The notes beneath the pieces are model-generated. The model was not told the DNA's origin. It was given only the letters and a program-made list of their open reading frames with translations, and made no database searches. A stretch of 64,000 bases of DNA from Takakia lepidozioides (taxonomy: Eukaryota > Plantae > Bryophyta): the NCBI GenBank assembly GCA_030704615.1, contig CM060732.1:16430001-16494000 (forward strand), in the 5' to 3' direction. Each line of letters begins with the position of its first letter. Within the stretch, counting starts at the first letter, position 1. The position numbers were made by a program, and so were the translations under genes. Positions 9,463 through 59,172 of the stretch are shown piece by piece.

Positions 9463-9474
9463 GCTCTGATACCA
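9463..9474 (-). promoter_or_regulatory. PBS (tRNA-iMet) of Ty3 element 1
   Basis: GCTCTGATACCA, reverse complement TGGTATCAGAGC. Confidence 0.85.
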
Positions 9475-13280: not shown

Positions 13281-13333
13281 GTAGAGGGGACTTGGCGTTT
13301 TTTTGTCTCCCCTACCATCTGTTTTCTTTCTTT

Positions 13334-13487: not shown

Positions 13488-13509
13488 GTTGGGGGGGCAG
13501 ACAGGGACT

Positions 13510-13583
13510 CAAACCCTAGAATTGGGGCATGAAGATGTGGTGCACGATGTGGCCATCGACTACTATGGGAAGCAGTTGGCCAC
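13510..13583 (+). pseudogene. SEC13: SEC13-like N-terminal WD40 fragment
   Basis: QTLELGHEDVVHDVAIDYYGKQLAT matches the conserved SEC13 start (..ETGHEDxVHDVxMDYYGKRxAT); similarity stops after it. Confidence 0.8.
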
Positions 13584-13915
13584 CTTCACGATGGACAACT
13601 GCAATCGCAAGGTGTGGCTCTCAATGTACGATGTGAAGAAGTTTGTTCATCCTGCAAATGTGGGCTCTTGGCGACTGTTAGTACCATGATTTGGTATTCT
13701 TCCTGCTGTTTACAAGGTTCTTCAGAGAGTCAGCTTGGTCTTAGCAGGTCGTGTTTCAATCTCTTCTCGCTCAGCTGCACTGTGGTGGTTCTCATGGACC
13801 AATCTGACATTAACCGGACTACAAACACAAGCAACACACATAAGAGGTCCTTTTGGGTTCATGGTCAGTCAAATCCTCCATGGGTCATGACACAAGGTCG
13901 AGAACAATGTGGTGA

Positions 13916-18930: not shown

Positions 18931-20720
18931 TGTGTCGCGCACCTCACTTCAGTAAGCTCTCCCCTCAAGTCATAGTTACTCGCTTGATCCGCGCGCCTAA
19001 CTCCCAACCTGGCCGCCGGGCCAACTTGGAGCTCCGGCTGCTCACCGGGGCATAACGGTCCCCCCTTTGATCTCCCAAAGAATCCTCCAACGATTTAGAA
19101 CCAGCGGAATTCCCTTTGGTAGTTGGCAGTCCGGAACAGCTCCCCACTCTTTGGTCGCTTTTCGGCTCGCTCGCTCACCACTAGATTTTGGTCACCAATG
19201 AGCTTGCACCGGTTCTCACTACTCTCCCTATATATACTTTTGTAGCTGTCCGCGGGGGTTTTCACAAACAACATGCCATTTTATGGCAACCACCACGAAC
19301 ACCCTCGACTCCCGGTGATGAGTCGCGGTGAGTCTTGGCCCACCCACCACGGCCCCTATGGACCGTGATGAGTCCCAAGACTCCCCACGACTCCCACCAC
19401 GAGGTCTCCGCCCCAGGGTGAGTCCTTGCCACCCCCACTAAGTCCCGCCAAGCTACCACCACCCCTTGTGGAGCCACCCCCACCGCAACCCCGTGTGCGG
19501 GGCTCCACCTAGTGAGCGCCTCCGCCTCCTTGAGTGCCTTGGGCACTCAAGGGTGCTTCAACCCCCCATACCTATCGCTGCCACTGCCCCCACCATAGGG
19601 GCAGCCCCTCTTGTGTCCCGACCCCCCTGCCCTCAAGGCAAAAGGCCGCGACACACACCCCTACCAACAGGGAGTCGATGTCCTCATCGGCATATCCATT
19701 TTGTGGAAACGAATATTTAAGTTGTGGCGTCAAGGAGTTTGTTTCCGTACCATGGCGTCCCATGGCAAAGAACCAAACCCCACACTTGACTCTACTCTCC
19801 ACTACTAGTTCGTTTTCCGACTTCCTCCAAGTCCCGACCCAGGGTGGAGCCTCTCAAGCTCCTCCCAGTGCACTCTTCTTGGCCTACTTCAAGGCCAAGG
19901 AACGATCCTCCCCGAGGATCAAATCGCCTTACTGCAACAACATTGCTTGCGACCGCTCATGATGCCGCTTTTGGCATCACCTTGAGCAAGGGTTCACCTC
20001 GAACCCTCTTTGACTAGGAAGATAACCTTGAACCAACCGCGCGCCCCAATCACTACAATTGGGTCCGCCTTGGAATGCTGGCCTGAGGTACGGGAACACG
20101 CCGAAGCCGCACTACGACTTCGTCCCGAGGCTACACGATTATAGTACGTGAACGGAAGCACGTAGCTTCCGCGTTAGCCCGCACTACAAAGCAACCCCCT
20201 CGGTAGCGCAATTATAGTACGCGCACGCGCCAGGTGCGCACTAGCACGTGAACTCCTAAAGAAGGCGCAAGTTTCCTTGCCCCTTGGATGGGAGTCACCC
20301 AATTTTGGCACTGCGCAAACACACGATTAACCCAATTTACCTCTCCCACTTTTGTAAGCTAGCATGCATTCTACACACTAGCCAACCACCATGCATCACC
20401 ATTCCAAACAAAATAAGAAGCACAACATTTGGAACCCATTTCCTTTATAACATATTTTTGTACAATACAAATTTTTGCAATCGGATTCCTAAGCTAGCTA
20501 AGCCGGGCTAAGCATGCATTTCCTCCCCCACGCTCCAAGGTTGATGTCCCCATCAACGCTTCTTCCGCTTTTGAGGTCGCCCTTCGAAAACTGCAACTGC
20601 AACCGCCTCGGATGCGTTTCCCATTTCTGAGGCACGCACCCAGATGCCTCCACATGATGATAGCCCTTCCATTTGACAAGATACTCCGTTTCTCGGTTCT
20701 TGAACCTACTTGACTTAAGT

Positions 20721-26700: not shown

Positions 26701-27306
26701 GCTGCTCACCGGGGCATAACGGTCCCCCTTTGCTCCCAAAGAACCCTCCACCTATTTGGAACCAGCGGGAATTCCCTTTGGTAGTTGGCAGTCCGGAACA
26801 GCTCCCCACTCTTTGGTCGCTTTCCGGCTCGCTCGCTTACTCACTAGTTTTTGGTCACCAACGGGCTTGCACCGTTCTCGGGGTTACTACTCCCTATATA
26901 TACTTCTGTAGCTGTCCGCGGGGGTTTCACAACCAGCCATGCCATTTTTATGGCGAACCACCACGAAAACCCTCGACTCCCGGTGATGAGTCGCGGTGAG
27001 TCTTGGCCCACTCACCACGGCCCCTATGGACCGTGATGAGTCCCAAGACTCCCCACACGAGGTCTCCGCCCCATGGTGAGTCCTATGCCACCCCCACTAA
27101 GTCCCGCTAAGCTACCACCACCCCTTGTGGAGCCACCCCCCCGCAACCCGGTGTGCGGGGCTCCACCTAGTGAGCGCCTCCGCCTCCTTGAGTGCCTTGG
27201 GCACTCAAGGGTGCTTCAGCCCCCCATACCTATCGCTGCCGCACCACCACAGGGGCAGCCCCTCATGTGTCCCGACCCCCTGCCCTCAAGGCAAAGGGCC
27301 GCGACA
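20721..27306 (-). mobile_element. Chromovirus, inner copy of the same family
   Basis: LTRs 20721-21422 and 26597-27306; PBS GCTCTGATACCA at 26583-26594; flanks TAAGT (20716-20720) and TACGT (27307-27311) form a near-TSD; chromodomain sequence of the outer copy is continuous across the insertion. Confidence 0.93.
22263..26545 (-). pseudogene. Chromovirus gag-pol with C-terminal chromodomain (many frameshifts)
   Basis: LVDTGASHSF; [12 protein letters not shown]; [12 protein letters not shown]; YIDDILVYS; HDSPLAGH; SMDFM, VVDRFSK, IVSDRD; chromodomain EYEVEAILKSRR..EYLVKWKGY...SW. Confidence 0.93.
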
Positions 27307-30300
27307 TACGTACTGCCTCCACCACGTACTCAGGTTCATTTTCATGATCCAACATCACAGTGGCGGACGCAACACTTGATGCCGATTCGGACGCGCTTCA
27401 TCTTTGAAGTACGGCTTCAAAAGGAGACGTGGAATACTGGATGCACCTTGCTGTTTGCCGGCAGCTCCAATTCATACACATCCTCATTCATACCTTCCGG
27501 ATGCGAAAGGTCCCGCATACGGAGGTACGAACTTTGGACTCACTTCCGGAGGTAGTCGGAAATTCTTGATGTTCAACCAGACCTCGTGCCTGCCTCAAAC
27601 TTCACTTCCTTCCCTCCGCTTCCGATTCGCCTGCCTTTTTCATACCCGTTTCCTAGCTTTGGCAATGTTGTACTTTGCGAGCTTCAACAAACGCTCGCGT
27701 TCTTCCTGTACCGCCGCCGCTACTGGTTTCCTCAACGTCCTGGGCGGCCCAACTTGTCGGCACCAGAGGTGCTTTTCCATAGACCAATACGAAAGGGGAA
27801 ACTCCCGTTGCGGAGTGTTCTGTGTTATTATAACAGAACTCTGCCGCGTCTAAGTGTTCACCCAGTCTGTTTGGTCTGCCGACACGTAATTCCGCAAGAT
27901 CTGCTTCACTACGGAATTCACTCTTTCCGTTTGGCCGTCGGTCGTAGGTCGGAAGGCGGTGCTCATCTTCAGCCTCGTCCCCATCTTCTTCCAAAGTGTC
28001 CCAAAAATTTACTCGTAAACTTTGGATCGCGGTCCGAGACAATATCCTTCGGGACTCCATGATGCTTTAAGACGTGGGCGAAGTAAAGTCGCCCTGTTTC
28101 CTCCTGCGCCGTTGCCGTCTCCTTGGTGGGGATGAAATGGCCCATTTTACTGAACCTATCCACCACCACCATGATTGCATCGAATCCTTTTGACAGCGGC
28201 ATAGCAGTCATGAAATCCATCGAGACGCTTTCCCAAGTCCCCTCTGGAATCGGCAAGGGTTGTAACAGCCCCGCTTGCTTTTTGTACTCGCTCCGGTTTT
28301 GTTGGCATGTGGTGCATGTCTTGACATACTCCTCTGCCTCCTCCTCAGTTTGGGCCAGAAATACTCTTTCTTCAGAGTCCCGCGTGCCGTTTGGCTCCGC
28401 CGTGGCCCGCAAGCGGGCTATCATGGCCAGTCTCTCAAGAGCTATCTCTGATCCCCCCTCCTTTCGCACGTAAAGACGCTTTTCTTATACCCGTAGTCAA
28501 TCCTTTTGCAAGTGGAATTGCGATTGAACCCCCCCTCCTCAAGTCCTGCATCACGGACTTCGCCAGCTCATCCTTCCGACAAGCCTTCCGGATCTTCCTT
28601 GTACGCCGTTCTCAACCCCTGTACACCAACATAAGCTGCTGCTTTTCTAACTTAAAGCATCGGCCACCCACGTTGTTCCGTCCCGTTTTGTATGGATATC
28701 CACGTCGAACACCGCCAAAGTATCTTGTCACCTAAGTTGTTTTGGGGACAACTTGGGCTGCGTGGCAAAATACTTCACCGTGACATTGTCCGTGAACACC
28801 TCACTGGGTTTGAACCAACATAGGACGCCAAAGCTCAAGACAGTGCACCACCCCGCCTTCATCTCTTTCTCGTTGCGTCGGCCACCATCTCTCCACTTCA
28901 ATTCAGTTGTCTTTACTTTCGTAAGCCACTGGACGTCCCATCTTGCATCGTACAAAAAAAAAAACAAAAAAACAACCCCCAATCGTCGAATTCCGACGCA
29001 TCTGTATGAATCTCGAACGTACGATCGCCTCCGGGAGTCTTCAAGACTGGAGCTTCCGCCATCTGCTGCTTCATTCAGCAAAAGCTTGGCCACAAAGGTG
29101 TTTCATCATGTCCCATACTTTGGACTTACACAGAAGGGTCTGACAGCGGCCCCTCGATCTTTGGCGAAATTCCTCACATACTTCCTGTAATATGAGGCTA
29201 GTCCTAGGAATGATCGCATTCCGGGACCGAATCGGAGGCTCCCAGTCCAGATTGCCCCTCACCTTCCTGTCATACATATCTGATCCCATCCTGTGCTCAC
29301 ATGCCCCCAGGAACTACTCCAACTTTTGTTACCCCGATTCTTCGCTACTTTGAAGCTTTGGATACAAGCTTCCCTTCCCCGCAATTTCTGGCACAACCCT
29401 TTTGAGGTGCTCCAGGTGCTCCCCTTTGTTTTTTCCGAATACACAAGATGTCGTCGCTGTACACGATCACAAAGTCATCCAAACCACTCCTGGAAAAGTC
29501 TGTTCATTCAGAGGCTAAAGGCGCGGAAGCGTTTGGTAATCCAAAGGCAATCACAAGAACTCATTGAACGCATACCTTGTCCTGCACGCGGTCGTCTCCT
29601 CATCTCATTCCGCCATCTTACTCATTCCGCCACTGTCCCATTCCGCCATCTAATTGATGATAAGCCCGGAGCGCAGATCGATCCGGCTGAAATAAACGCA
29701 CCTCATAGATGCCCCCCCACGTCGCTTTTCGGGAGTCCTAGCTTTTGTGCCGTTGCCCGGTGTCATGAAGGAGTGCGACGCGCCCTATGTCCACACAACA
29801 ACGACACGTTAGTTCCGGATATATCCCATCCACGAACAATAACTGACTTCCCTTTCGTAAGGCGCCTAGTTTTCCTGATACAACTCACACAGAAAATTTG
29901 CCTCACCTTTCCAAGTCCTTGGCGACCACCGCTTCCACCAAGCGACTGATGGTATCCTTCCGACAGCTCTGTGGTCGCCCGAGTCATGTTCATTGCCGGG
30001 GCTTCTGCACTTCTTGGCCCTGTCCGGGGCTCCCCACAATTGAAACACCTCCACTCCATCAAAGGTCGTCTCTGTCGCCATAGACCGCTCCACCCGCTTT
30101 CCTTTCGAAGCACCGAGTTGCCGCCTTGACTTGTGAAGGCCCTCCTTCGATTTCCACGTGCCTTGTCGTCGCGTGGCCTACCCACTTCTTTTTTCCGATC
30201 GGAAGGAGTTACCTTCCCTTCCCGCCGGTCTTCTTGTGGTTCAGCTCCGTACAGCCGTTGTCTTCACCCTTAGGGACATCCAGAAACATTCAGCCCTCTC

Positions 30301-31897
30301 AATTGCCCCGTTCAAAGTCTTAGGGTGGCCTTCTCCTCCAACTTCCGCCGGCCCATAAGGCCAGTCCCGCCAAACAAAGTTGAAGACATTTCTGGTTTCT
30401 ACCATGTCCGCGACTTCCGAGCAACGCACATTGAAAGCCTGGACATATCCCCGAATGTCATCTTTTTGCTTTCAAATTCCTCCAACTTGTCCGGGCGAGC
30501 CAAGACGCGTTGAGGGGCACAAACTGGCCTTCTTCATCAATTCCTTTAACCCACTTCCAGGTCCAGGTTTCCGCGGCTTGGACCTCGGTCGTTAAGGCTT
30601 TTTCTGTCTTCTGCCACTATTGTTGAGCATAAGCCCCTCAAGGGTGGGAGCCACTCCCCCCGATCCTCGTCACTCACTTGGCCGCACCGAAGTACTGCTC
30701 TAGCTCAAAAGCCAGTGTTGATTGCTTCGATTCGACGCCCCGCAGGTGCCGGTTCCTTAGGCCTTCACCTTAACCTTTTCCTTGGTGGAAGTGGGCTTAA
30801 TCCGCCTTCAACACGTCTTTCATTCAACGTCCCGCCAAATGCGCCAACAACCCTCCCACAAGGCCGCCGCATGGGAGGCATCTGTTGCTTGGTCGGAGCT
30901 CTCAGGGATTCCTCAGGCTCCGACTCTCAGATTCCTCCCTCTCTTTAGTGGCTTCGTCGTTTTCGGAAACATGCATCGCTTCCTCAAACAGGCCGCCTCG
31001 GTGACACGTCGCCCCCATCAGGCTCACCACGATCATTATCTTTGGTCGTTCCGCTTTCCCTCTTTGGCTTGCCTGCCCGACCCCATGATGATTCAATCCC
31101 AAGGACGATCGCGTACTGAACTCTAACTCTCTCTGATTACCAAGTGTTTGCGCACCTCACCTTCGGTAAGCTCTCCCGCCCCTCAAGTCATAGTTACTCG
31201 CTTGATGCCGCGCCTAACTCCCCCAACCTGGCCGTCGACCAACTTGGAGCTCCGTCTGCTCACCTGTGGCATACCGGTCCCCCCTTTGATCTCCCAAAGA
31301 ACCCTCCAACCGATTTAGAACCCAGCGGAATTCCCTTTGTAGTTGGCAGTCCGGAACAGCTCCCCATTCTTTGGTCGCTTTCCGGCTCGCTCGCTTACCC
31401 TCACTAGATTTTGGTCACCACCGGGCTTGGCGCCGTTCTCGGGGTACTACTCCCTATATATACTTCTGTAGCTGTCCGCGGGGGTTTCACACACAACCAT
31501 GTCATTTTATGGCGAACCACCCAACGAAAACCCTCGACTCCCCTGGAGAGTCGCGGTGAGTCTTGGCCCACCCACCACGCCCCTATGGGACCGTGAATGA
31601 GTCCCAAGACTTCCCAAGACTTCCCACCACGAGGGTCGAGGTCCTCCGCCCCATGGTTAGTCCTATGCCCACCCCACTAATTCCCGCTACGCTACCACCA
31701 CCCCTTGTGGAACCATCCCTACCGCAACCGGTGGTGGGCTTCCACTTAGTGAGCGCCTCCGCCTCCTTGAGTGCCTTGGGCACTCAATGGTGGCTTCAGC
31801 CCCCCATACCTATCGCTTGCCACTGCCCACCACCACAGGGGCAACCCCTCTGTGTCCCGACCCCCCCTCTGCCCCTCAAGGCAAAAAGGCCGCGACA

Positions 31898-32810
31898 CTG
31901 CTACGGAACCATTCCAGAAATGGGGATTGGATTTTGTTGGGCCAATCAATCCACCAGCCAGGAATACTCAGAATAAGTATATAATCACAGCCACTGATTA
32001 TACTACAAAATGGGTGGAAGCTAAGGCTCTGAGAGACAACACCGCTAAGTCCATAGCAAGGTTCCTATATGAGAACATTATCACAAGATTTGGCTGTCCC
32101 CTGGAATTTATTATTGACCAGGGAAGTCATTTCATTAAGGAGACCTTTCCCTGTTGACTAAGAGTTCATGATTGTTGCACAGGAAGAGTACAACCTATTA
32201 CCCCACAGGCCCATAGGCAGGCAGAGGCCACCAACAAAATACTATGTATTATTTTGGCTAAGATAGTCAATGCTAATAGGAATGATTGGGATACCAAGCT
32301 GTTGACAGCTTTGTGGTCATACACGACTTCATACAAGGTCACCACCAAGTATACACCATTCCAATTAGTTTATGGCATAGAAGCTTTATTTCCAGTTGAA
32401 TCTTATTATCTACCATGAGAACTGAATAGAGGAGGAGAATGAAATTGGAGGACTCCATTAAAGTAAAGAAACATGAACTATATCATGTGGAAGAAGTACG
32501 TGCTGATGCAACAGATAACATGGCCAGAATTCAGATGAAGAGGAACGATCAATTTGATGAAGATAAATTTAAGACTTTTAAGACAAGTGATTTGGTACTG
32601 TGGTTACAGAAGAAGGGAAAGATTAAAGCTTCTAAGCTTAAATCACCATGGAAAGGACCTTATGTCATACAGAAAATGTATGATAACAACACAGCTATGT
32701 TACAAACCATTAACAAAGAGATGCTTGGTAAAGTCAATGCCAATAAGATGAAGGGATACAGTGGTGTCCATTATAGACCATGGCAGCATTATTTGCATCT
32801 TGAAACATAG
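31898..32810 (+). pseudogene. Integrase core and C-terminus of Ty3 element 2
   Basis: EPFQKWGLDFVGP, ATDYTTKWVEA, IITRFGCP, DQGSHF, WKGPYVI. Confidence 0.9.
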
Positions 32811-36879: not shown

Positions 36880-39175
36880 TCAAAAAACCAGGTTCATCTT
36901 GCGACCCCTTATAGAAGCGTCTAAAGTTTCCCAAAAGGAGAGGACCGCTGTCCTGTCCTGGTGTCGCTTGTGCTTGCTTAGCTGCAACGAAAGAGAACAA
37001 GGTTCAGTAACCCAGTCAGCTACTTTCCGTTGGACCTTGACACCAACTTGCAGGCCTCTGTTGCCAACAGCCTACCTCAGCTGCCCATATGTTCCCTGGG
37101 ACATTTTGAGTGGTTATCCTAGTGCACGCCAGACTGAGGCACCTGAGACACCCGTTCAGTCCCCCTCCACCATCCTACTCTGATTTCTATGCGCTCTACG
37201 ACAGAAGCACCCATCTGGAACATCCCTCTGCCTCTTCCCAACCAGAAAGCTCCAATGTCAAGCTCAGAAAGCTAAGAGCAACCATACTCTACATTTTCTT
37301 CAAGAACGTTTGGGAGACATGACTGGGTACGTACTGTTGCATCCCCTCAGAAACTCGCCAAAACATAAGGCAGTGACAGTGTGCCTAACTCGTCACACTT
37401 TCTTCCCTCCAGCCATAATAGGTCTACATATCCTTTGCTTGGTAAAGTTAAAACGTTCTTCATGCACATTTCAAGCACTTGAACTGCGGACTTCGCACCA
37501 AAGCCAATCATGGATGGGACAGTAACAATATCATATAGCAGCTTGCATCCATGTAACACACAAGCTTGACAAGCTCTATATATTTAAAAGTACCCACCGA
37601 GATTATCTTCACATTCCATTGCTTCACTCTCTTGGCAGACTCCACACTGTCATCCTCAAATCGCAAATACACCCCCATTACTGCGACAATCCCACATCAA
37701 AAGTTGGACTTTCAATTGCAACATTTGTCAATTAAATATTTCAATAAAGCTAAAACTTTTGTCAAGCTCATCTACCGAAGCCCGTAATGTGAAAGACTTT
37801 GAGGGAAGGGCTGAAGATGGTAATGCGCTACCCCAGAAGGTGGAGTGGCCACGGCTGGAAAGGGTAGCAGAATCAGCGAAAGCAACTACTGAAACTAACT
37901 CCAAGATGTTCTGAGAAACGATTGACAGAGGTGAAACTCACATTTGTTGAAGATTTCGACATGGTCTTTAAATGGCCAATCTTTGAATTGCCACTCTTTA
38001 CCAAGCACAAATACGGCAACAACACGCTCCCAGTCCTTCGCAGAAAGGGCTGACGGCTTGTCCCTCACTTCGTACATGATAGGACGGTCCCTTCCCATCT
38101 TTCTTTGAATGGAAACGAACTCAGGCTTCTTTGCAACCTTTTTCACCTTCGTCTCAGGGGTTACATAAATTCCATCTTCTAGAAACTCCTTTGCATTGTA
38201 CGTGTTAAGCAGTGTCTGTGAAGCACTGGGAACAAGGATGATAGGAGGGCCAGCCTCCACTTTTGCTTTCTGGTTCGGTATAGTCGCCGAGGGCCGGTGA
38301 TGGGCATGCTGATTGGGACGATGCGTTTTCATGTCGGGTTTGGGTTTTGATGCATCTTTCTTCTTGGGGTCTGCAATGTATGACTGTGAGGGATCAATTC
38401 CAAGCTCTTCGGCTGCATCTGTCCCAAGGTGCTCCTTCCAGAACCGCTTCTCTTCAACGTTAACATAACGATTAGCAGGGTTTGGAGCCGGCATGGGCAG
38501 CTCCATGGGCTTCTCTGGCTCTTTCCTCAGCTGCTCTTCAGCCTTCTTCTTCTCCTCCTCCCTCCTATTCAGCATAGCTAAAATCCCTTCGAAGTTCTTG
38601 TTATGGCAGAGAAGAATCGTTTCCCTGTCTCGTAGAGGACGCTCACGCTCCCGTATAACCTCAATCATGTTCCTGCGTGCTGGTTCTCCACTGAAATCCG
38701 TGCTCTCACTCTCTTCACCATCAACCTCATTGCTTCGGAATTTCTTCAAAACGTGTTGGTTTATCTCATCAAGCCGGTGTGCCTCTCCCTCTTCATCACC
38801 GCGGGAATGCTTTCCAGTCCACTCCTCCCTAGCGGGCACGACTGGCGCGGCAGGGGCTAGTAGCTCAATGGCATCATTGGTGGCAACCTTGCCCTCAAGA
38901 TAGTCTTGCAGCGGCTTTCGGTCAGTGAAGGTCACAATCTGTAGCTTAGATGTCCGGGCCTGCTGCATGTAATCAGTATGCCGCACATGAGTATTCTTCA
39001 CAAAGAAGACCAACGATTCCAAAGTGTAGAGACTTCCCTGCTTGGACCTGTATGCGGTCTCGATGTTACGCGGGAATCGGTAGTCATCACCGAAGTGGTA
39101 CTCATCCCCCAACAGTCTCACGCTCTCCAAGTCATTGCGCACAGTGTAATCCCGCAGCAGACTCAATGGATCCAT
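36880..39175 (-). CDS. CDC73: CDC73/parafibromin (PAF1 complex subunit), 3 exons: 39175-37942, 37680-37598, 36981-36880; ~472 aa
   Basis: MDPLSLLRDY start, PIILVPSASQTL, DWERVVAVFVLGKEWQFKDWPF. GT-AG introns join in frame to LMGVYLRFEDDSVESAKRVKQWNVKIIS and LSKHKRHQDRTAVLSFWETLD...*. Confidence 0.95.
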
Positions 39176-39662
39176 CTTGCACCCACTTCTTCCAGCTTCA
39201 AGACCCCAGATTTTCACCAACCACCACCACGTAAACTAACAACTTCTGTTCCAGTAATAACCCCACTTCTCTCAGCACATCCAGATCCAGCACCAAGCTC
39301 TCATCTGTGCAAGCTTGCAGCTATTCCTCGTTCCCCTCCAAACCCTAATCTCCTACGTTGTACTAACACTAATAAGTACTGAGATCAATCTGATTAGTGT
39401 CAAACAAAACTCAATTAGTGAGATCATTAGTATAATTTCATCAGTACTGGACTAATTAGACCTAAATTGTTTTCCTCTTATATTTGGTCAAATAGCCATT
39501 AGTAGCCATACTTGGGCTTTCGTAGCCTTGTTGATCACCCCCCATGATTCTCCTTTGATGAGAAATTAGAACATTGTTGCTCTGCATCATGGCTCCACAG
39601 ATCAGTCTTTCTTGTGGCAAACTGCCAGTGAATAATATGAATAAATTTGTTTCCTCTAAGCT

Positions 39663-46429: not shown

Positions 46430-46740
46430 ACCTTTTGCCCGGGGGGTGCACTCTTTATAAACTGTGCGTATCACGTGCGTTCGTCGCCTAATAAAAAAAT
46501 CCCCTGTATACGGGTCCTTGGATAATTTATACCCCCTCTGTACATACTTTTTGAAGATTATAAAATCCCCTCCTGTAAATATACAAAAATTTACAATTTT
46601 CGAAAAGTACCCCCTTCTGTATGTATATTCTCATTTTTCATCATTAAAAATAACCCTCCAATATGTATATGTATGTTTTTATATTATATCGAATTTATTC
46701 ATTTAAAACATAATAAAATCTAACAAATTAATTAAAAAAA

Positions 46741-49700
46741 TTATTTGCCTTTGATAAAGTTGTCAAAGACTTTTCGGTCATTTGCATCAAGAACATATGT
46801 GTTTGACTTGACATTGTACTTTAAACATGCTAACGCGATAATGGAATCCAAATCAACCATCATGTTATCCGTCAAATCGTACGTATAGACCCCTCCTCGA
46901 ATTTTTTGGTACCATGCTAACCCAATCTCCATATGAGAAGGACGCTCCAATAAATCAACAGAATCCCTACATTCTACAAACCGCTTATTGATTTTCTTCC
47001 GCATTCTTTGAACCCTGCCCAAATACCAAGTGCCTTTGGTTGCTCCTCTGCAGGTTTTCCCTGGTCTACCTTTCCTGTTTGTAGTTTGGATCGCAGTCTC
47101 CCCATCAACAAAAAATACAGCACAATCCGAACCCAATCCCAAGCTCGTGGCTTTGTTGCTGGTAGTTGGTTTGTTTTCTCGGCAAAACAACATCGATGCA
47201 CTTCTTACTCGTGTCAATCTATCCTTGGATAGAGTAGGGTTGCCATTGAGTTGGCTAACCAAAGTGCTTTTGAATATGGTCTTCCCGTCTACTTTGACAA
47301 ATGGAACCACTGCCTTCGATCCATCTTTCTCTTGTTCAAACTCATCAATGACAGCATCCAGAGTATGTCTCAATTCACTTTGAACAAGTACCTCTTCCGC
47401 ATGATCATCCAAAGGTTGGCTCAAAACATCCTCCATTGAATTCGAAGGCCCGCACACCAATTCATCTTCCACGACCTCATTTTGAATATGTGTGTCTGCA
47501 TTAAGAGGACAAATAGAATCTATGGCATTGACATCATCACCCTCCTCTTCCATGCTTTTGAATAGCTCGACCTCCATTTGTCTCTCAATTGTCCATGGCT
47601 CATTCCACCAATCCAAGTTTGTTGCTTTGTTTGGTTTCATCCCAAGTTTATGGCATAAAAGTTGCGCTTCTAGAAATCCAGTTTTCAAAGCCTCCACAAT
47701 GCAATCATCCGATTGGACAGTAGAAAAGTCGGACAAATCAGCAAGGGGGATACCTGGCTTCTTCTCCAAAGAAGACCATATGTGTTCTTGTTTCTTGTGA
47801 GCTCTTGAGAACTTGGGTCCTTTTGGATTCGCCTCGAACTCGGATATGCGTGTTAATGCTCCCGCACTCTCAATCAAATCACACCCGTCATATGTCCTCT
47901 CATTCCGTGACATACCTCCCACTTTGCTGAAGAATATTTCACACACATCTGAACCAACAAGGCTCAAAGGAACTTGCACATGATTAAACTTATCCTTGAA
48001 CAATTTGATAAGTAGAACCACGTAGTGGCATGAAATTTGTAAATCCAAGTATGCTTCCCTGCTAATGAAGAAGGATTTCAGATTATACACCTCGTGCTGG
48101 AATAGCCACAACTTCCACAATCTGAAAAAAAAATGATACCTTCGCAGCAGATTGTACCCTCTCACACAATGACATGTGAGGAGACAAAAAAATGTCGATG
48201 TAGCATGAAATGATGTATAGGTAAATTTCAGTACCTTTGGTCCTCTCTCTTCGATGATTCACAGTTGATTGTAACTCCCTCAAACAAGCTTGCACCTTCC
48301 GAGATGCCAGTCGTTGAGCTGCTGCCCAATTCTGTCGATCTTCTCTTTTGATATCACATTCCCGAAGTCCATGCTTGTCCACTGAAAATGAATGGTAGAC
48401 CAATAACACATGATTCAATGTAGCAACCTCATCACCCAACACCAAAGTCCGTGATGCACTGTCCAAGGGATTTACCAATTTTTTCCCATTGTGGATGAAG
48501 TCCTGATCATGGAGTCCGTATATATCTCCCCCGTTGCACACTCGACCTGTAAACAACCATCCTTCCCAAGGGATGCAAAATCTACTTCCAGCCCCATTGG
48601 CATAATCTTCTAACATCACTTTTCTCCTCCTACTATCTCCGTCTGAAGCATGCCCAATTATAGGCCCAACCACGTCCCTCACATATTTGTCCCACAACTG
48701 TCTCACCACTTCCCATTGTGATCTCACAAAATTGTTGTCAAATCTATTGCAAGTGAGCTGGATTACCAATACCAATCGAGGTAACCGTACATGTAGAGGA
48801 TTTGCTATCAACACTCTAGCATAATGGGCAACCACATTGTTTTTGAATGCCTCCACAATATGTTGGTACCCTGATTCCCCTTCTCCCACTTGCACCACAA
48901 AATTTGAAATACATACATGGTTGTCTTGAAGCCCACAAAACCCGAGAAGGGTGTCATCCCTAGCAATCCAACGTACCAATCGCTTCACAACAGTTTCATC
49001 TTCGGCCACCATCACTGGGATGCTTCCCAATGGAATATTTGCATCTTCCATCACATCTCTGTAAATTCCAGCCACATGCTGAAATATATCATCCGTTTCT
49101 CCCGCTCTATACTTCAAACCTTTCCTCAAAGACCGTCTTGTAGTATCAATAGAAGGACCCCCACATTTGAAGCCAAAAAATGATGCAATCTCGGACCCCC
49201 CCAAAGCTGCACAGTCTCAAACATTGTTTTTGTGCTAGTACCATACCTCTTCCCTTGTGGAGACCTGTCAATATTCTTGCCCATATCAACAAGAAAATCC
49301 CACAAACTTTCTTTTCCTTCAAAATCCCCCCTCCTATGTGCATCAACAATATCACGACAAAATTTGAGAACATCTCCTCTTTCAATTGCCTCAATCCCAG
49401 ACTCCTTCAAACTCCTACATCGCACAGACAATGATGCCACTTTGGTCCTGGCCTCCCACAATTTGAACCTCAACTGCCTCAACTCCTGTCTGTTTTTGTA
49501 AACTTGTTTGACAATCTCCGCATTTCCAAGATATGACAACCTTCTTCCCTTGCCAGTATCTCTCTCCCCTCTACATTCCATGGCACCTCTTTCTCTATAT
49601 ACCCTCATTCTGAAGTCATTTTCCAAGGGAATGGAAGAACATGCTGAACATCTCAAGTTTGGAAATGGCTCCCCATCCAATGACACTCTAAAACAATCCG

Positions 49701-51153
49701 CGTGCCGAAACGTACCAACAACCTTATGCTCTTGATTGTTTAGAGTGATGGTTGCATTTGTCAACGGCTCGACATACCACTTCTTTCCTCCCTTGCTATC
49801 TTGAAGGAATGGTTTCAGACTTATTCTCTGCTGGTTGTACTCCCACCATTCATCCCATAGGCCCCAACACAAACTGTCTCTTCCTTTGTTGCATTGGGAC
49901 CTTTGCTGTAATTGTCAATCCTCGATCAGATCTCCCCGTTGGGCAGCGTCAACACAAGCGTATGGAGTTTGTGACGAGGATGCTCCCATTGTTGATGCCA
50001 CAATTGGATTGTCAAGTGGTGGGGACGGCAACACAGGTTGACTGACCAAGAAAGAGCTTAGATCCCGTTGCTTTACATCTTTGGCAATCATAGGCTTTGG
50101 AGGCCTTCCTCTCTTTTTGCAAGGTCCTTCACTACTTCCAACCTTCTGGCAAATCTCTGCATCGACATGAGTTTTTCCTTTCACATGCTCTGTCAAAGAA
50201 GATTGCAAAGAACCTGTCCTTGGAAACAAGAGTAGCCACTTCGAATCCAGTGGGCACCTAATCCTTATGGAACCCAACTGCGAATAGTCTCCAATTGTGG
50301 CTTCCACAATCTCAAATCTGTTTCCAGGATTGTCCTCACAAAACCGAGCGACTTCCTCTAATGCCTCCTTCACCCTGTTCTTCTTTGCGTCTAATGCTTC
50401 ATCTGCATTTACAGGGCTGATGACACATTGTGATGAACCCTTCCCATGACGCCTCTCATAGGCTATGCGATGCCCCTCACTCCTCAAATGAGATCTCATA
50501 AAGTTTGCACATGCATCATATGGTTTGTTTTTCCCAGACCGTGCATAAACATCCTCACACTCAACACACCATATGTGGAACATTGCTTGTCCTTGTTGAT
50601 CCTTTGTCATCAGCTCAAACTTGTCACATCGTCCTTCTGCAGAGATTTTCCTTTCAACGGCTCTAATCTCTTTCTGCCATTTTTGAATATCGTTGGATGT
50701 AGCCAACGTGCTGCACAATCTACCAGATCTCTGCTGAAGTGCATGCTCATGTGCATGGTCTTCATTTCCACCATCGCCAGCAAAGGGTGTATCAGGGTCC
50801 ATCCTCATCTTGGTAGACACTGGTGCCGGGTCCTCGCCTGGTCTGTCCTCATGCAAGATCGTAGAACCACTGGAAGATAGAGGTCTTTTCAATCCTTGGT
50901 CCCCATCATTTTGGTCTGAAATCTTAATGTGTACAGTATCCCCTTTCAGAACCATCCTCTCTTCTTGCTTGGCTGAAAGGACACTACCCCCCATGGAAAG
51001 GAAATGAAATTTTGCTGAGACAAGCTCATCACCTATAATTTCTGCTCGGATGCATTTGTATGTGACACCTTGCATAGTGAACACAGAACCAAGCCTGTTT
51101 GGTGATGCATCTCCTCCAACAAGCAGGACTTTTACTTCCAACTCTTCTTCCAT
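46741..51153 (-). pseudogene. P-like transposase, ~1470 codons; one in-frame stop (49915-49917) and two homopolymer frameshifts (~49160, ~48130)
   Basis: AEDET, ASDGD, DFIHNGK, DRQNWAAAQRL and GSDVCEIFFSK parallel the P/THAP9 DE, SD, DxxHxxK, AAQL and QDxLExFF motifs. N-terminal C/H zinc-finger-like units and AT-hook KRGRPPK. Splice acceptor just upstream of the ATG. Confidence 0.8.
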
Positions 51154-52214
51154 GATGAGTTCACCTGCAAAATGCAATGAAAACATTTCAAATCAGACCT
51201 TGATAGACCAATAACAAAGCACCCGGGTTGGAAGGTTCCAAAGTCCTGTTTTATACAACCCTATAGGCTGTCCAAGTAGGAACTACGTTCATAAGAGGAT
51301 GAAATGTATACAGAAGCAAGTACCTGATTGATGAGTTTGATGTTGTTAATTTTTGCTGCTGCTATTGACCAAATGCTGCTACTTCCACTGCTGGTAGCCC
51401 TCTTGGGTGATCCTGAACCCACAGTCCATCCTTGCATCAGCGGCTAGCCCTCCCTCCACACTAACATATTTAAATACAAAGTTCTGTCAAACTCCCTACG
51501 ATGTTGCATGAAGAAATCTCACCTTGTTGACAATATTGTCCCACCGCTGTGGATCAAATTTATAGAACTCCTGCCAGCGCTGTTCCTTGCTCCAAATCTG
51601 GCCCTCTTGGATGATTTTGCGCCCACGATCCTCTCCCTGCATCAACAGCTACCCCTCCTTCCACACTAACAATGCGTACATCATGCCTTTGCAGCTACTA
51701 CTGTGGCTTCCAGTTGACCATCTACCCATCCAGGTTTCTTGTAGCTATCATTCCACATGGAATCATAGGTAATCTGGAGCTTGGAATCCGCCATCTGGAA
51801 ATCTAGGGACGACTCTGATAATAGGGAAAAACAGGCTGAAATGTGTTGAAGAAGGTACCTTCATTAGCAGTCCCTTGTTCTATCTATTATCTTTTTTTAG
51901 GTACTGTCATGCTACCACCTCGGCAGCAACTTGCAAAGTCACTCCAGAGCACCGCAGATCCACCCAACGAGCTAACTTACAGAATTCAATACATATGCTT
52001 CAGGGCTGAGTCTGATGAGAGGGGAAAAACAGGCTGAAACAGGTCAAACCAGAAGGTGCCCTCAGGCTGAAATACGTTGAAGAAGGTACCTTTCATCAGC
52101 AGTGCCTTGCTTTATCAATTGCGCTGTTGCCGCTGCTGTTTCCAGTTGACCATCCACCCACATTGTCCCACCATTGACTGGGGTCAGAAAAGTTCTCATT
52201 CCAAAGCTTCTCTT

Positions 52215-52865
52215 CATCTCTGTGGTGCTATTGTAGGGTGACTTCAATGCCCAAGTGGGCAAAGGGCTCCATCAGGACGATATCATTGGGTCTTCTGGTG
52301 AGGACGAGCTGAATTCTAATGGCAGATGGTTAATTAACTGTCTGGAAGAGCTTCAGCTTTTGACCTTGATTAACAAGACAAGAGGTGACCAAGTGCAGTG
52401 GACTCGTGAAAAATCCCAAACTGGGGAACGTTCCATTGTGGACTATATCATAATGGACAAAAATTGTTCCCCCAGTGTGCCAATGTGTTGATCGACAGAA
52501 CTGATATTGGTACCTCTGTCCACTTTCTGGACTGAGATCAAAAGGTGTTTTCCCAAGGCCAGAGTAGAAGAGATTCTCAAGGACCTGGACCTGGATCCGC
52601 AAGTCTTGACCCTGCTGGATAAATCAGACTTAGAGGCTGTAGTGTCCAAAGCCATGTCTATTGCCATGAGATTGTCTGATGAAAATGAAGTTAGGCATAA
52701 AACTTCCCTGAACTTGTTTCTAGTCAGTGACATGGGGGAGGACATCTTGGATGACCTCAAGGGTCCACCCACTCTCGGCACTAGACTGAAATTTAAACTC
52801 AGGGAAGGAAGCCTACCTTTGAACATGAAACAGAAGCAGAGAGGAAAGGGGGAGTGCACTCTCCC
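52215..52865 (+). mobile_element. LINE fragment (endonuclease piece fused to a C-terminal piece), same family as 53376-55900
   Basis: GDFNAQVG...NSNG...SIVDYI joined to ILKDLDLDPQVLTLLDKS...TRLKFKLR. Confidence 0.85.
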
Positions 52866-53375
52866 AAGTGAACCTGCATCATTCAGTTGGCAAGACCGTG
52901 TCTGAAAAATTGATCCATTTGAAGACACCACGGTGCAGCTGAGCACAGCCTGACATGACAACAATTAAACATCATACTGAGACAAGAGAAGCAGTCAAGG
53001 ACACAGTCATGCATATGGCAGCAAGTGATCACCCTTCAAACATGATTGAAAACATACATGAGGTCAAAGGCAATAAGAAATCAGCGAAGGGTACTGCAGC
53101 TAACAGTTGGAGTGTCTTTAAAGACAAAGGGAAGAGAAAGAAACACTTCACTGGCAATGAGGGGAGGCTGTGGAAACGCCAAGAGGATGGCACAAATGAT
53201 AGAAATAACAGGGCTGGGCAAAGGATCCTGCAGGAAGAAGAAAGGGTATGTCAGCATGGAAAGGACGTGCGGCTCATTCCAACAAAAGGGGAACATTCGT
53301 GCAGTTAAGTACAACAACCAATTGCCCTTCAATTATGGCTGGAATTTTCCAAAAGGCGAGGGATGATAAGGATGA

Positions 53376-55900
53376 GATTGTACTCATAAGACGTTGTTTG
53401 CCGTAGCCTTGTGGCCATTGACCCCGCGCCCAGTTTCAGTGGGAACAAAAGGAACAGGGCTGACGTTGGTAGTAAGACTTACCATCGTATAAGGAATTAA
53501 TCCGGGTTTTCCAGATATCCTCTAGAAAACCCTTCACACAAGCATCAATCTGCTGTGTGTGATTTGCCCAAAAACTAGGCCTCAGGAGGGCCTGGGCTTT
53601 TGGCTCAGCCTCGAGACTTTCAAAGTTGGTAAACAGGGGTACAGGCACAATTCCCTTGATAGAATTGAAGAGAGCCTCTCTTTGGTGAGAGAACCCGGAC
53701 AGCGTATCAGAAAATGAATACTGTCTTCAGATTGCCCACACAACGGACAATTGCACTCTCCCTTTCCTCTCTGCTTCTGTTTGCTGTTCAAAGGTAGGCT
53801 TCCTGCCCTGAGTTTAAATTTCAGTCTAGTGCCGAGAGTGGGTAGACCCTTGAGGTCATCCAAGATGTCCACCCCCATGTCACTGACTGGAAACAAGTTC
53901 AGGGAAGTTCTCTGCCTAACTTCATTTTCATCAGACAATCTCATGGCAACAGACATGGCCTCAGACACTACAGCCTCTAAGGCAGATTTATCCAGCAGGG
54001 TCAAGACTTGCGGATCCAGGTCCAGGTCCTTGAGAATCTTTTCTACTCTCTTCTGCCAGGACTTAGCCTGTTTGACAGGGCGGTCCTGTTTCCAAGATAT
54101 AGAGTCAATCAACTTAGGATATCTGGTGTTGGGCATATGTTGCAGCTGACCCCACCATCTGACCTTGAATTCATCTCGTCGGGAGCTTAAGGATGGAATG
54201 CCAAACTCACCCCGAACAGCCACATTGGCTGTTTTGGAGCATGCTGACATACACTCCTTAAGCACCCCCACTTGAATGGATTCTAGAGACTTAGCCTGGT
54301 TGGAGTTATCAACCCATATAGCAGATCCGTACTCCAAGGCAGGTCTAATAACGCGACAAAGCATGGTTTTCTTAACCTCAGAGATGACCCCTCTGCAGTG
54401 GAAAAATTTAGTGAGCCCCAGAGCTTTGCCCTTGCCAGTTCGAACAACTTTCCGGATATGTGCATCCCAATTACAATTGGAGGAAAACTCAACGCCCAGG
54501 TAAGTGTAGGAAGGGAGGACCGGGATCTCTTGGCTACCCCACTGCCACTTAAGATCACTTCCTCCCTCTCCTCTGTCGTTGAATGCTACCACTGCACATT
54601 TGCTGACATTAGCCTCTAGCCCCCAAAGATCAAAGTATCTCTTCGCGCAATTAATCAACTCCTGGTGTGATGCCACGGTAGTTCCCCGGTTCTTCTCTGT
54701 CACCCTTCTTGTATAGACTGACAATGACCCCCTGTCGCCAGCGAAAGGGGATCATTTCAGTCTTCCAGATAAGGTTAAAGAGGAGAACTAGGGCCTCTAT
54801 CATGGGATCGCCACCGTGCTTGATAAGCTCGTTGACAATACCATCAGGTCCACCAGCTTTATATCCATTTAAATGTTCAATTGCTTCCACAATCTCAGAA
54901 GAACTAATGGGAGCGTTATAAGCCATTGAAATATACTCCAGTTCATCAGGGCTGTTTTGAATCATAGGAACAATTTTTCCAACTGTGTCCCTCCATTCAG
55001 CAGAAGACCCCTCACTGTTAGACCTAGAAGTTCTGCCAAGGATACTATAGTGATTTTCAAAGGTTTTGACAATGTCAACCGATGAAGTCACCACTGCACC
55101 TTTAGTAGTCTTCAGCGCTTGTACTTGCTGACCATTTTTAGGCTTGTACAAACGTTGAAGGGCCAACCATAATTTCTTGTCATTACCACCATGGTGGTTT
55201 GAGTTTATTTCACTGTATAACTTATCCCAGTATAATTTCTTCTGAGACCTAACAAGCTGATTGATATCTTTCCGGAGCTGATAGTACCTCGCCCACAATT
55301 CTCTGTTGGTTTTCAAATTGCAGCACTCTTTATAGAGGGCTCGTCCTCACCAAAAGGCCCAATGATATCGTCCTGATGGAGCCCTTTGCCCACCCGGGCA
55401 TTGAAGTCACCCAATAGCACTACCTGACCTTTGGCAAGGAACGAAGCACAGTCCAGCTTTACATCTTCGAAGGCTTTGTCTGCGTCAGCACTAAGGGTCC
55501 CCTCTGTGGGCATGTAAACACAACCCACAAATAGGTCCTTCGTACTCATGCCGCCCTTCAGATTCAGTTTTAGCCAGATACTATGTTCGTACCTCAAACC
55601 CTTGTTGATAATTTCACAATTATCAAACAAGAAATCACGGACAAAGAATCCAACCCCTTTTTGACCGCGTTTGGCAGAGGCTGCCTTGAGAGTACACATC
55701 CTACCTGCCCATTTATAACCATTGACATCTCCAACCAGTTTATCCGAAGTTTCCCATGTTTCTTGCCCAGCACAGATATGAATATCATTAGTCCGAAGGA
55801 CTTGTCCCACTTCGAGTTGTTTCCTTTGGTTAGTAAGCCCTGAGAAGTTGAAAGTGGCCAGCCGCAAGCCAGCCCTTTGCATGTGAATTGTTTGTCGACA
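53376..55900 (-). mobile_element. Non-LTR retrotransposon (APE-RT-CCHC; RTEX/RTE-like), internally deleted
   Basis: APE: LATFNFSGL, GQETW, VYMP, LGDFNAR. RT start: KAGGPDGI, LYKKGD..NYRGIT. RT end: ANVSKC, YTYLG, IRPALEYG. Zinc knuckle CPLCGQSEDSIHFLIRCP. No poly(A) tail. Confidence 0.9.
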
Positions 55901-58256
55901 TCTAGGTAGCTTGGGATTGCTCCTGGACGCCCAACCGTTCTGCAAAGGGGGGACAGTTACCCCATGTGTAGATTTTGCTCGTCTTGTGTAAACTCTTGAG
56001 TACCAAATCCTTCAGATTCAGGACGTTCAGGTTCTGTACACTTAGGGGCATCTTGTCCCTCTGGCTGTTTGGATTCAATAAGGATGAGAATAGGCCTAAT
56101 ACAGTGAGTACAACCATTGTGTCACGCCAATCATTATTAGGAAAGAAAATAGGCCTAATGTGCTCATTACCTCTGATGACTGGGAATCTTGATGCCCATG
56201 TCCTCCTGTCATTGCTGCACAACAATCCGCCACCACACCCGCATATCATCACCGATCAGCCCAGGCCTGCCCCACATTCCCGCGCACTTACTTCATCCCC
56301 TTCGATTCCTGCCCTCTACATACATCACAACCTCAAACCTTCTCCCAAATCAGTGCCCTCACCACATTCTGGTGCCCTCACCACATTGTTCTACCATGCC
56401 CTGTGGAGAGGAGGGGAGAGGAGAGGAGGAAAAAGAGAAAGCCCGCGGAAGGGAAGGCGAACGCGGGAGAGGAGGAGAAAGAAAAGAGAAAGCCGCGGGA
56501 GGTCAGGGGAGAAAGATCGTGGAGCGAAAAAAAAAAAAAAAACAAACATACAAAACGACGATTCCACGATTCGATCCCGGGATGCATCGCGGCGGAATCG
56601 CCATTCTTACCACTACACTATCCCTAAAAACTCAACAACCCCCTCCTGTAAAATTATATTTAAGGTGTTTTAAACCCCCCTCTGTATGTATAATGTTGTA
56701 CATGGGGGGGTTTAAAATACCCCCTCCTATGCACGCACGTGGCTGGTACATTTAATGAGGAGTGCACCCCCCGGGACCTTTTGAGACCAAGCTCTTTTTT
56801 TCTTGTGCCTGGCAAGACTTTGCTTTGGTTAAGGTAGCAGTGCTGTGGTGCTGGCGGAGTCCTCCCTGCACGGTTAGGCTTGTGGAGAGATGGCGTCTCC
56901 CCCAGACAATAAAAAAATAAAAATAAAAATCTTTTTCTGTTTGTGTTGCTTCCCTGCTTTCTTTGGCATTCTCTGCGTTTAGATTGAAGTGTATTTGATC
57001 TCGATAGCAAGTGTGGAAGCCTGTTACTCACCTCGTGCATCCTCACTAACTCACAATGCGTTGTGGTTGTTTTTGGGACGGGCACAGGTGAGGGCTTCCA
57101 CTTAATATTCTGATGTCTAGGTGTTGTTGGATGCCAAGTGGGATTGCAGAGCAGGGGAAGGAATCGCTTGCCAGGGACTCATCTTAAAATGTTGAAAAAC
57201 TAAACTACTCTATGGTTTCTCTTGATCCTACCTCTTTCCTTCCTTGATTTTTGAAGAACAAGTGTAATGCTTTCTATGATGGGCTATTTCGGCCTAGCCA
57301 GTGGAAAACCTCTGTTATGTGGTGACAGCCGAGTTTATGATGGCTTGTGTGAGAGACACACATCTGTTTTCCAGGCCCTAGTTTGCTTTGTTTACCTTAT
57401 GGTAGTTGGAAACAAATTGAGAGGCTGCAAGGAACTGTTTGCTGCAGCTACTCGGGTACCTCTGTTAGTAAAAGGCCCCTGTTATGTTCCAACCCAGATG
57501 GCTTTGTTAGCTAGATGCTTAGGCCAGGGTATGGTGAAGTTTATGCCTGTGGCTATTCGGCTGACACTGAAATATGGCAGTAATATAAATGGTAACTGGT
57601 TTTTGAGGTAGCCAGGGTGGTCAAGTGGAAATACCCCCTGGACATGGTGTAATGACATGGTCAAATGTGGAATGATGTGAAGGGTGTACTGACAGTATCA
57701 TAAACTGTCACAGGATGTGTATGCAGTCCTTTATATTTACCTTGCTGTGTCATGAACTTTGATTTTCAGGTGTAGCAAGAAATAAAGATATAGGGGTATT
57801 CTGGAAAACTTACCAGACATATCCACCTCCCCTGTGGGGGCAAGCTGTGCTGCAGACCAGTCTAAGCAAATACTGGCAGGGCAAGGTATTTAAAATCTGT
57901 GATGTCCAAGTGTTCTTTTTTCTTTAAAAAAAAAACCCCCTCCATGACACCCATGGGGTTTGAGTAAGTATGCTTGGATTACAGCTTGCGGATAGTAAAT
58001 ATGTATGACCATTTGACCTACACCACATCAAGGCCAAAATATGGTCAAGTACCCGCCATCCCACCCAGACCTGTGAATGTGTATCATGATCATGACTGGT
58101 GGTCAATCAGCATTAGTGAAATACTCTTTGGGTTATGAATATTACTGACATGAACACATTACTGTGCATGGATGTAATTCTGAATTTCTAAGCTTGATGA
58201 TTGATGGATGGTGCCACGGTTAAGTGGCCGATATGTCTAATTATTCTTCTTATTCA

Positions 58257-59172
58257 TGACAACAACCCTAGCGGTCCTGTCTTTGTCTTGACATGACAAA
58301 AAGTATCTTCCCTCTCTTTTTTGCTGCTCACAAAAACAAACAAACCACAAGGGAGAGAGGGTGCAGAAAAAGTTAAAAAGATTGTACTCATAAGATGTTG
58401 TTTGTCATAGCCTTGTGGCTATTGACCCCGCGCCCAGTTTGAGCGGAAACAAAAGGGACAGAACCTGCCTCTGTCAGGGGCTGATGTTGGTAGTAAGACT
58501 TACCTTCATATATAGAATTAATCTGGGTTTTCCAGATATCCTCTAGAAATCCCTTCATACAAGCATCAATCTGTTGTGTGTGATTTGCCCAATAACTAGG
58601 CCTCAGGAGGGCTTGGGCTTTTGGCTCAGCCTTGAGACTTTCAAAGTTGGTAAACAGAGGTACGGGCACAATTCCCCTGATAGATTTGAAGAGAGCGTCT
58701 CTTTGGTGAGAGAACCCCGGACAGTGTAGCAGAAAATGAGTAATGTCTTCAGATTGCCCACACAACAGGCAATTGCACTCTCCCTTTCCTCTCTGCTTCT
58801 GTTTGCTGTTCAAAGGTAGGCTTCTTGCCCTGAGTTTAAATTTCAGTCTCGAGAGTGGATAGACCCTTGAGGTCATCCAAGATGTCCTCCCCCATGTCGC
58901 TGACTGGAAACAAGTTCAGGGAAGTTTTCTGCCTAACTTCATTTTCATCAGACAATCTCATGGCAACAGACATGGCTTTGGACACTACAGCCTCTAAGTC
59001 AGATTTATCAACCCATATTGCAGATCCGTACTCCAAGGCAAGTCTAATAATGCGACAAAGCATGGTTTTCTTAACCTCAGAGTTGACCCCTCTATAGAAA
59101 AAGTTAAAAAGAGAGAGGGAAGATATTCATGTCATGTCAAGACATGGACAAGACCCACTAAGGTCATTGTCA
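58257..59172. mobile_element. MITE-like inverted repeat (~70-bp arms) split by a LINE insertion
   Basis: 58257-58322 (TGACAACAACCCTAG...GTCTTGACATGAC...TCTTCCCTCTC) is an imperfect reverse complement of ~59106-59172. Confidence 0.65.
58382..59095 (-). mobile_element. 5'-truncated LINE copy with TSD
   Basis: Matches the 3' end of the 53376-54395 LINE; flanked by the direct repeat AGAAAAAGTTAAAAAGA (58365-58381, 59096-59112). Confidence 0.9.

Follow-up and report, generated by a model that had tools for sequence, protein, structure and literature searches.

Does a moss chromosome carry a transposon of the P superfamily, and if so, in what state and with what relatives? The question is raised by a stretch of 64,000 nucleotides from Takakia lepidozioides (GCA_030704615.1, contig CM060732.1, positions 16,430,001 to 16,494,000), referred to here as the window, in which an element with inverted ends occupies positions 46438-56775. 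Seven DNA-transposon superfamilies have been counted in plants, and P is not among them (PMC6839031, 2019). An earlier note on this DNA had read the element as a P-like transposon with atypical termini. Our analysis indicates that it is very probably a defective copy of a P-superfamily DNA transposon of the cut-and-paste type, belonging to a deep and unannotated branch, in a moss genome. We place its family in P, and not in hAT or KDZ, because of the combined weight of a fold match, P/THAP9 neighbours among predicted folds, a helix-turn-helix (HTH) match in one relative and 8-bp target duplications in four elements.

The family came to light through the transposase encoded by the element. A word-index search with a 373-residue piece of its core gave 101 relatives, all of them without a Pfam domain; those with a species name come from the liverworts Riccia sorocarpa and Calypogeia fissa and from the fern Adiantum nelumboides. 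An exhaustive profile search extended this to 3,964 representative clusters at E ≤0.001, with 630 of them at E ≤1e-30. The fold evidence was obtained on the model of one relative, P0102 (1,005 residues; 37% identity to the window core, E 5e-93), which was predicted from a 50-sequence alignment with a mean predicted local distance difference test score (pLDDT) of 83.5 and a core mostly above 95. When this model was compared with solved structures by Foldseek, the Drosophila P transposase (6p5a, 6pe2) was matched at E 1.9e-11 with a template modelling (TM) score of 0.70 by target, while the runners-up were Hermes (E 3.9e-3), Transib (E 1.2e-2) and RAG1 (E 1.3e-2). With VIA-align 2, 404 of 442 residues were aligned to 6p5a at Z 23.1 and a root-mean-square deviation (rmsd) of 4.7 (model 145-641 against chain 133-566), a span in which the HTH, the two halves of the RNase H and the insertion domain are all included; Transib, RAG1 and Hermes reached Z 11.0, 9.6 and 8.2, respectively. 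In addition, among the nearest folds listed by the ESM Atlas, all those assigned to a Pfam family belong to P/THAP9 families; unnamed Basidiomycota clusters occupy the top row and two further ones. A language-model search led to TNP-like_RNaseH_N, where the nearest cluster likewise comes from Basidiomycota. The P-element HTH model PF12017 was matched in 4 of 50 members, and one of these, P0157, lies above the curated cut-off (23.7 versus 23 bits) at residues 135-188, directly upstream of the core. The P-like reading, for which the earlier note had asked a profile and structure comparison, is supported, with the next family at Z 11 and P0157 passing PF12017.

Several observations weigh against this assignment. 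Pfam gave no match on the four pieces of the window's transposase, and none on the core of 24 long relatives apart from P0157; its P core models (PF21787, PF21788, PF21789) gave a single match, at E 0.06, among 50 members. Sequence searches of the PDB with the core piece and with profiles of 23 and 50 members returned coiled-coil and low-complexity noise and no transposase. The failure of the Pfam core models and of the PDB sequence searches agrees with the description of the element as divergent. The fold evidence itself belongs to a predicted model of P0102 and not to the core of the window, and the catalytic acidic residues given below were picked by motif conservation and predicted secondary structure, without an inspected superposition. 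Moreover, the structural matches include no entry for Kolobok, Novosib or Zisupton, which weakens a statement of "closest among solved" and is covered in part by the Atlas search. Finally, a THAP domain is missing and the ends do not look like classical P ends.

The boundaries of the element could be defined exactly. A terminal inverted repeat (TIR) of 16 bp, CCCGGGGGGTGCACTC, lies at 46438-46453 (plus strand, at the end downstream of the gene) and at 56760-56775 (minus strand, at the end upstream of the gene), both copies being exact, and no further match to it with up to 3 mismatches was found in the 64-kb window. Beyond these 16 bp the inverted repeat is imperfect, covering 43 nt in all at 79% (to 46480 at the left end). 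The 8-bp direct repeat ACCTTTTG flanks both TIRs as a target-site duplication, its left copy (46430-46437) being identical to the right one (56776-56783). By our own estimate, about 0.2 exact 16-nt inverted pairs lying no more than 12 kb apart are expected per 64 kb of random sequence, and the equality of the flanking 8-mers multiplies this by a further 1/65,536; the structure is thus not due to chance. Both the exact TIRs and the perfect duplication had been described before, and they were confirmed. An empty, uninterrupted insertion site was not found in the window or in the loci of relatives. Inside the TIRs, the subterminal region downstream of the gene (46454-46740) holds direct copies of a CCCYYCTGTA-type word at 46532, 46568, 46611 and 46654, that is, every 40-44 bp or so, and the one at the upstream end (56253-56759) holds the word CCCCCTCTGTA at 56676 with an inverted partner at 56699-56721. 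The CCCYYCTGTA-type word is present in both subterminal regions; it has 5 matches in the window, against 1.3 expected, and three of the five are in the element's ends. Such words are candidate binding sites for the transposase.

The same type of end was recovered at the loci of three relatives. The window element ends in CCCG6TGCACTC and is flanked by ACCTTTTG. In L003, whose protein is about 40% identical to that of the window and falls in another clade, the element spans 6278-13774, with ends CCCAG7TACTC and the duplication GTTGAAAT; in L002 it spans 6968-13780, with ends CTCGAG6CACT and CTCG13CACT and the duplication ACCTTGTT; and in L004 (Riccia sorocarpa CM100799.1, GCA_046195345.1) it spans 3993-8989, with ends CTCG5AGTCACT and the duplication GAACTTGT. 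Four independent elements therefore have in common C-Y-C, a run of 5-13 G and then ..ACT, each with an exact 8-bp duplication. Ends were looked for and not found in L005 and in L001, a 6.2-kb contig that is probably too short. The element of L004, with 4,997 bp, has intact ends and only N-terminal transposase homology, and is probably a deletion derivative judging from its sequence; a second, separate transposase remnant lies at 9389-11588 of the same locus, starting about 400 bp past the right end of the element. Three of the four duplications, namely ACCTTTTG (46430-46437), ACCTTGTT (L002 6960-6967) and GAACTTGT (L004 3985-3992), resemble one another, which hints at a target preference, four cases being too few for a claim.

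How else could this locus be explained? One could suppose a separate superfamily, either a sister of P or a poorly characterised one with 8-bp duplications such as Novosib, sharing with P the general architecture alone. The absence of resemblance, at the level of hidden Markov models, to either the Pfam P core models or the P transposase, the 14-15% identity in the structural alignment of P0102, the different ends, the double length, the missing THAP finger and the extra C-terminal domain would all fit such a view, and the reference sequences of Novosib, Kolobok and Zisupton lie outside the comparison. Yet the match to P, at Z 23 over 404 residues comprising the HTH, both RNase H halves and the insertion, is double that of any other transposase, the nearest Atlas clusters that bear a family are all P/THAP9, P0157 passes the PF12017 threshold at the expected position, and an 8-bp duplication is that of P (PMC3698922, PMC7776569). 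We consider a separate superfamily unlikely. Regarding Kolobok in particular, the duplications here are 8 bp long and none is TTAA, which is the target duplication of Kolobok; and for KDZ/Zisupton, no KDZ or Tnp2-type family appeared in any Pfam scan of the window pieces or of members.

The hAT elements (Hermes, Ac) deserve the same attention, since they are frequent in plants, leave 8-bp duplications and possess an RNase H core into which a helical domain is inserted. A divergent hAT element would account for the duplication, for a D/C-x-x-H-type motif followed near the C-terminal end by an acidic residue and FFS, and for the presence of Hermes among the structural matches. However, Hermes was aligned at Z 8.2 and rmsd 8.8 over 269 residues, against Z 23.1 for P, neither the hAT dimerisation domain nor another hAT Pfam family was found in any piece or member scanned, and the ends do not follow the usual hAT pattern, so that this explanation is very improbable. 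Still further from the data is a host gene derived from a transposase, whose inverted ends would be coincidental or relics. The long protein with a possible chromatin-reader domain recalls some domesticated transposases, and parts of the gene turn up in contigs from presumed RNA runs; against these stand the exact ends and duplication, the recurrence of the end type and of 8-bp duplications in three other genomes, the many diverged copies in the host genome, and the stop, frameshifts and nested retrotransposons of the window copy, which together make a host gene hardly credible.

Membership of the P superfamily leaves much room for difference. The Drosophila P transposase and vertebrate THAP9 (6p5a, 6pe2) have, as here, an HTH and an RNase H split by a large all-helical insertion domain, and the order of parts in the P transposase, zinc finger, coiled coil, HTH, split RNase H and C-terminal region, is also the order found here (PMC7776569). 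Both also have one transposase gene, an 8-bp duplication and a D-D-E triad accompanied by a D-x-x-H motif. Unlike P, the protein of this family shows only about 15% identity and is missed by the Pfam P core models, and it has about 1,480 residues, about double the 751 of the Drosophila P transposase. Its ends are made of C-Y-C and a G run, whereas those of Drosophila P are a 31-bp repeat starting with CATG. The gene is also intronless, unlike that of P; other zinc-finger-like motifs stand in place of the THAP finger of P and THAP9, and a BAH/Tudor-like barrel appears to have been added at the C-terminus. THAP domains are reported to be absent from plants (PMC7776569). In the P element and THAP9, a guanosine triphosphate (GTP) cofactor is bound by the insertion domain and the donor is cut with a 17-nt stagger; the insertion domain of the predicted model aligns structurally with that of the Drosophila P transposase. 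The P transposase is the only known transposase that requires GTP (PMC7776569).

Other members of the superfamily offer closer parallels in some respects. Galileo and 1360, the other Drosophila families placed in the P superfamily by their transposases and compared here by description, have intronless transposase genes as the window element does (PMC3698922), but they make 7-bp duplications (PMC3698922), against 8 bp in the four elements described above. Outside animals, P elements with 8-bp duplications have been catalogued for rust fungi (Repbase P-1_MLP, P-2_MLP and P-1_PSt; RepeatMasker class P-Fungi; PMC3164196) and are again compared by description. The nearest predicted fold to our model, from an unnamed Basidiomycota cluster, has a TM score of 0.76 by hit over 634 residues (query 116-972) and reaches into the C-terminal part.

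The enzyme can be described as a single intronless transposase of about 1,480 residues with zinc-finger-like motifs, a cysteine cluster, a coiled coil, an HTH, a split RNase H and a C-terminal barrel. AEDET (48992-49006), SDGD, DQDxIHNxKK and GSDxCExFFS occupy invariant or near-invariant columns in the family and are preserved in the window. We assign the first catalytic D to codon 48998-49000 within AEDET. SDGDSRRRK (48620-48646) would provide the second D at codon 48641-48643 (D188) or, alternatively, D190 at 48635-48637; it is followed by DQDFIHNGKK (48479-48508), the D-x-x-H/KK motif, and by GSDVCEIFFSK (47923-47955), in which the catalytic E is assigned to codon 47938-47940. We infer from these a D, D, E triad with a D-x-x-H after the second D, the placement on strands and helices being that of the model's secondary structure. 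The motifs DE, SDG, DxxHxxK and SDxCExFFS, named from the start as P-like, are all present in conserved columns of the family.

The two extremities of the protein are less conventional. For the N-terminal fingers, weak BED/C2H2 leads alone were obtained, and no THAP domain was found by Pfam in the window pieces or in any member scanned. The last 135 residues (46744-47148) are predicted to form a beta-barrel with pLDDT of about 90; when it was compared with 48,161 PDB representatives, the 20 best matches were without exception BAH, chromo-barrel, Tudor or PHF-type readers, at Z of about 7. The C-terminal region of P0102 (residues 837-939) matches likewise, and P0119 carries at its C-end, in residues 1066-1119, a Tudor domain recognised by Pfam (PF21743, E 9.7e-10). 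At such a Z, the BAH/Tudor-like identity of the modelled barrel is a lead, not a finding. Perhaps the barrel serves in chromatin targeting of integration.

How would such an enzyme act? Judging from fold and anatomy, the N-terminal fingers and the HTH would bind the subterminal words and the C-Y-C plus G-run ends, and the coiled coil, by analogy, would pair two subunits in a dimer. The D-D-E site would then excise the ends from the donor and join them to the two target strands 8 bp apart; when this stagger is repaired, the 8-bp duplication results. The barrel at the C-terminus may hold the enzyme on marked chromatin. Integration with an 8-bp stagger is the sole step shown directly, by the duplications in four elements.

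In what state is the window copy? The transposase frame runs on the minus strand from 51186 to 46741 over 1,482 codons (4,446 letters) and is divided into four open reading frame (ORF) pieces, which were searched one by one. Piece 1 (49915-51186, 423 residues) is a poorly conserved N-terminus with C..C/H..H zinc-finger-like motifs at 50470-50568 and 50167-50262. Piece 2 (49126-49872, 248 residues) holds RHADC...CSAC, a cluster of cysteines (49636-49707), with a long helix of coiled-coil type and the beginning of the HTH; piece 3 (48083-49204, 373 residues) holds the end of the HTH, the RNase H core and the start of the helical insertion domain; and piece 4 (46741-48165, 474 residues) holds the end of that domain, the RNase H helix with the E, a disordered linker and the barrel. 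The pieces are separated, on the same strand, by an in-frame TGA (49915-49917), by a frame change that falls at G and T runs within 49157-49201 and by another at a 9-letter homopolymer, 48125-48133. Homologous proteins align straight through all three and no intron is needed to explain them. The upstream region of the element, 51187-52221, contains short internal repeats.

Part of the distance between the gene and the upstream end does not belong to the transposon. From 52222 to about 56250, around 4 kb of the 10.3 kb consist of debris of a non-LTR (long terminal repeat) retrotransposon, here called LINE (long interspersed nuclear element), in two tail-to-tail fragments. The first, 52222-53374 (plus strand), is internally deleted; the second, 53375-56252 (minus strand), with an approximate right border, contains an endonuclease at 55313-55945 (Pfam Exo_endo_phos) and reverse transcriptase remnants at 53582-55316, the central reverse transcriptase being missing. 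Inverted duplicates of 298 nt (52561-52858 and 53752-54049) and of 74-88 nt (52222-52309 and 55339-55423) connect the two. A third fragment of the same LINE family lies outside the element at 58379-59093, 1.6 kb past its right end; that these pieces are so close together and rearranged suggests that the place is a hotspot or that rearrangement followed insertion. Without the debris the element measures about 6.3 kb, near the 6.8 and 7.5 kb of two relatives. Because the debris separates the gene from the upstream end, it constitutes a fourth lesion. The earlier note had spoken of a complete transposon with a transposase of about 1470 codons and three lesions; both ends are indeed intact, and 1,482 codons with a TGA and two frame changes at homopolymers come close to its count, but the nested debris had been overlooked. 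As assembled, the window copy is unable to make the enzyme, owing to the in-frame stop and one or two frameshifts; since both ends are intact, it could still be mobilised in trans.

The lesions were compared with contigs of four public runs aligned to 46741-51186, among which X1, with the same organism label, and X4, labelled "plant metagenome", are independent DNA data sets. In X1, 88 contigs lie on the gene at 90-100% identity (44 at ≥99%, 32 at 95-99% and 12 at 90-95%), and this spread indicates a transposon family that is multicopy and of mixed age in the host genome. Every X1 and X4 contig over the site has one additional C behind 49157, which puts pieces 2 and 3 in one frame. The run at 48125 is one letter shorter, with pieces 3 and 4 in frame, in some of the X1 contigs, at a depth of 107 of 442, and in X6, where the copy is diverged; X4 does not show it. 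As for the TGA, no contig that covers it differs, and the X4 contig over it carries the TGA. X1 and X4 have five substitutions relative to the window in common, so that their contigs may represent another copy or strain and not the window locus. The frameshift at 49157 is consequently either an assembly error or private to the window copy, whereas that at 48125 is real in at least some DNA, and the stop is real. In the earlier note the two homopolymer slips were seen as possible sequencing errors; the contigs are wholly free of the shift at 49157 and partly free of that at 48125. Parts of the gene are also present in two runs presumed to be RNA, which is no demonstration of transcription. In one X6 contig (on 46912-48443, from a copy 95-99% identical), an inverted left terminus and three unmatched letters stand directly before 46912; a junction at this interior position suggests a nested or rearranged copy, one element in another.

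Less damaged relatives do exist. Uninterrupted proteins of 1,377-1,638 residues were found, as had been anticipated when intact relatives were thought possible. In a FastTree tree of the core of 126 members, from which 17 redundant cluster members were left out and whose support is SH-like (Shimodaira-Hasegawa-like) only, the window falls in a clade of 25 members (support 100) that also includes the fern and liverwort rows and P0006 (L002). Another clade contains the L003 protein, P0102 and P0284, a 1,242-residue "uncharacterized protein" of the brittle star Amphiura filiformis that was reached by a search from P0157 (E 3e-56 to P0157). Going by sequence, the family extends beyond plants, in that this echinoderm protein and many environmental sequences belong to it. 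A lineage of land plants had been proposed, and this stands for mosses, liverworts and ferns without describing the whole family.

It is tempting to see in the window element the first characterised representative of a major unrecognised branch of P. Such a branch would comprise thousands of unannotated clusters, with a well-supported plant clade of mosses, liverworts and ferns, and would occur also in an echinoderm and in environmental eukaryotes; its ends would be conserved between clades with only about 40% protein identity in common, THAP would have been swapped for other fingers, and a barrel of the BAH/Tudor chromatin-reader type that may steer integration would have been gained. We advance this tentatively, with somewhat less than even confidence. 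No paper in the literature searched describes P-type elements in bryophytes or ferns, in agreement with the suspicion that the family is undescribed; novelty is here judged from that literature, and an entry for the family may already exist in Repbase or Dfam. If the proposal is true, P would become the eighth or ninth DNA-transposon superfamily of land plants, and the branch would be a new system for asking if P-type transposition ancestrally used GTP and targeted chromatin. With a P-type lineage present in three groups of bryophytes and ferns, the picture of transposon distribution in plants would change, and a very large set of eukaryotic transposases would prove invisible to standard domain annotation; because of this invisibility, members of the family probably stand under "unknown" in the repeat libraries of bryophytes and ferns. 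The window copy is dead and the mechanism is drawn from resemblance. A distant branch with a conserved G-run terminus and a reader-like domain is a natural comparison for the GTP mechanism and for target choice. Given the uninterrupted relatives of the above lengths, a functional test, and perhaps a new insertional tool for plants, is conceivable.

Two features of the surroundings may be added. At 37895-39220 (minus strand) lies an uninterrupted ORF of 441 residues encoding a complete CDC73/parafibromin (Pfam CDC73_N, CDC73_C), which is closest to Sphagnum fallax (68%), with Marchantia, Riccia and Calypogeia at 62-65%, and which thereby marks the host as a bryophyte. Further upstream in the window, the 14 kb from 18001 to 32000 have a G+C content of 0.51-0.57, against 0.41-0.47 in the adjoining blocks, with a steady negative GC skew.

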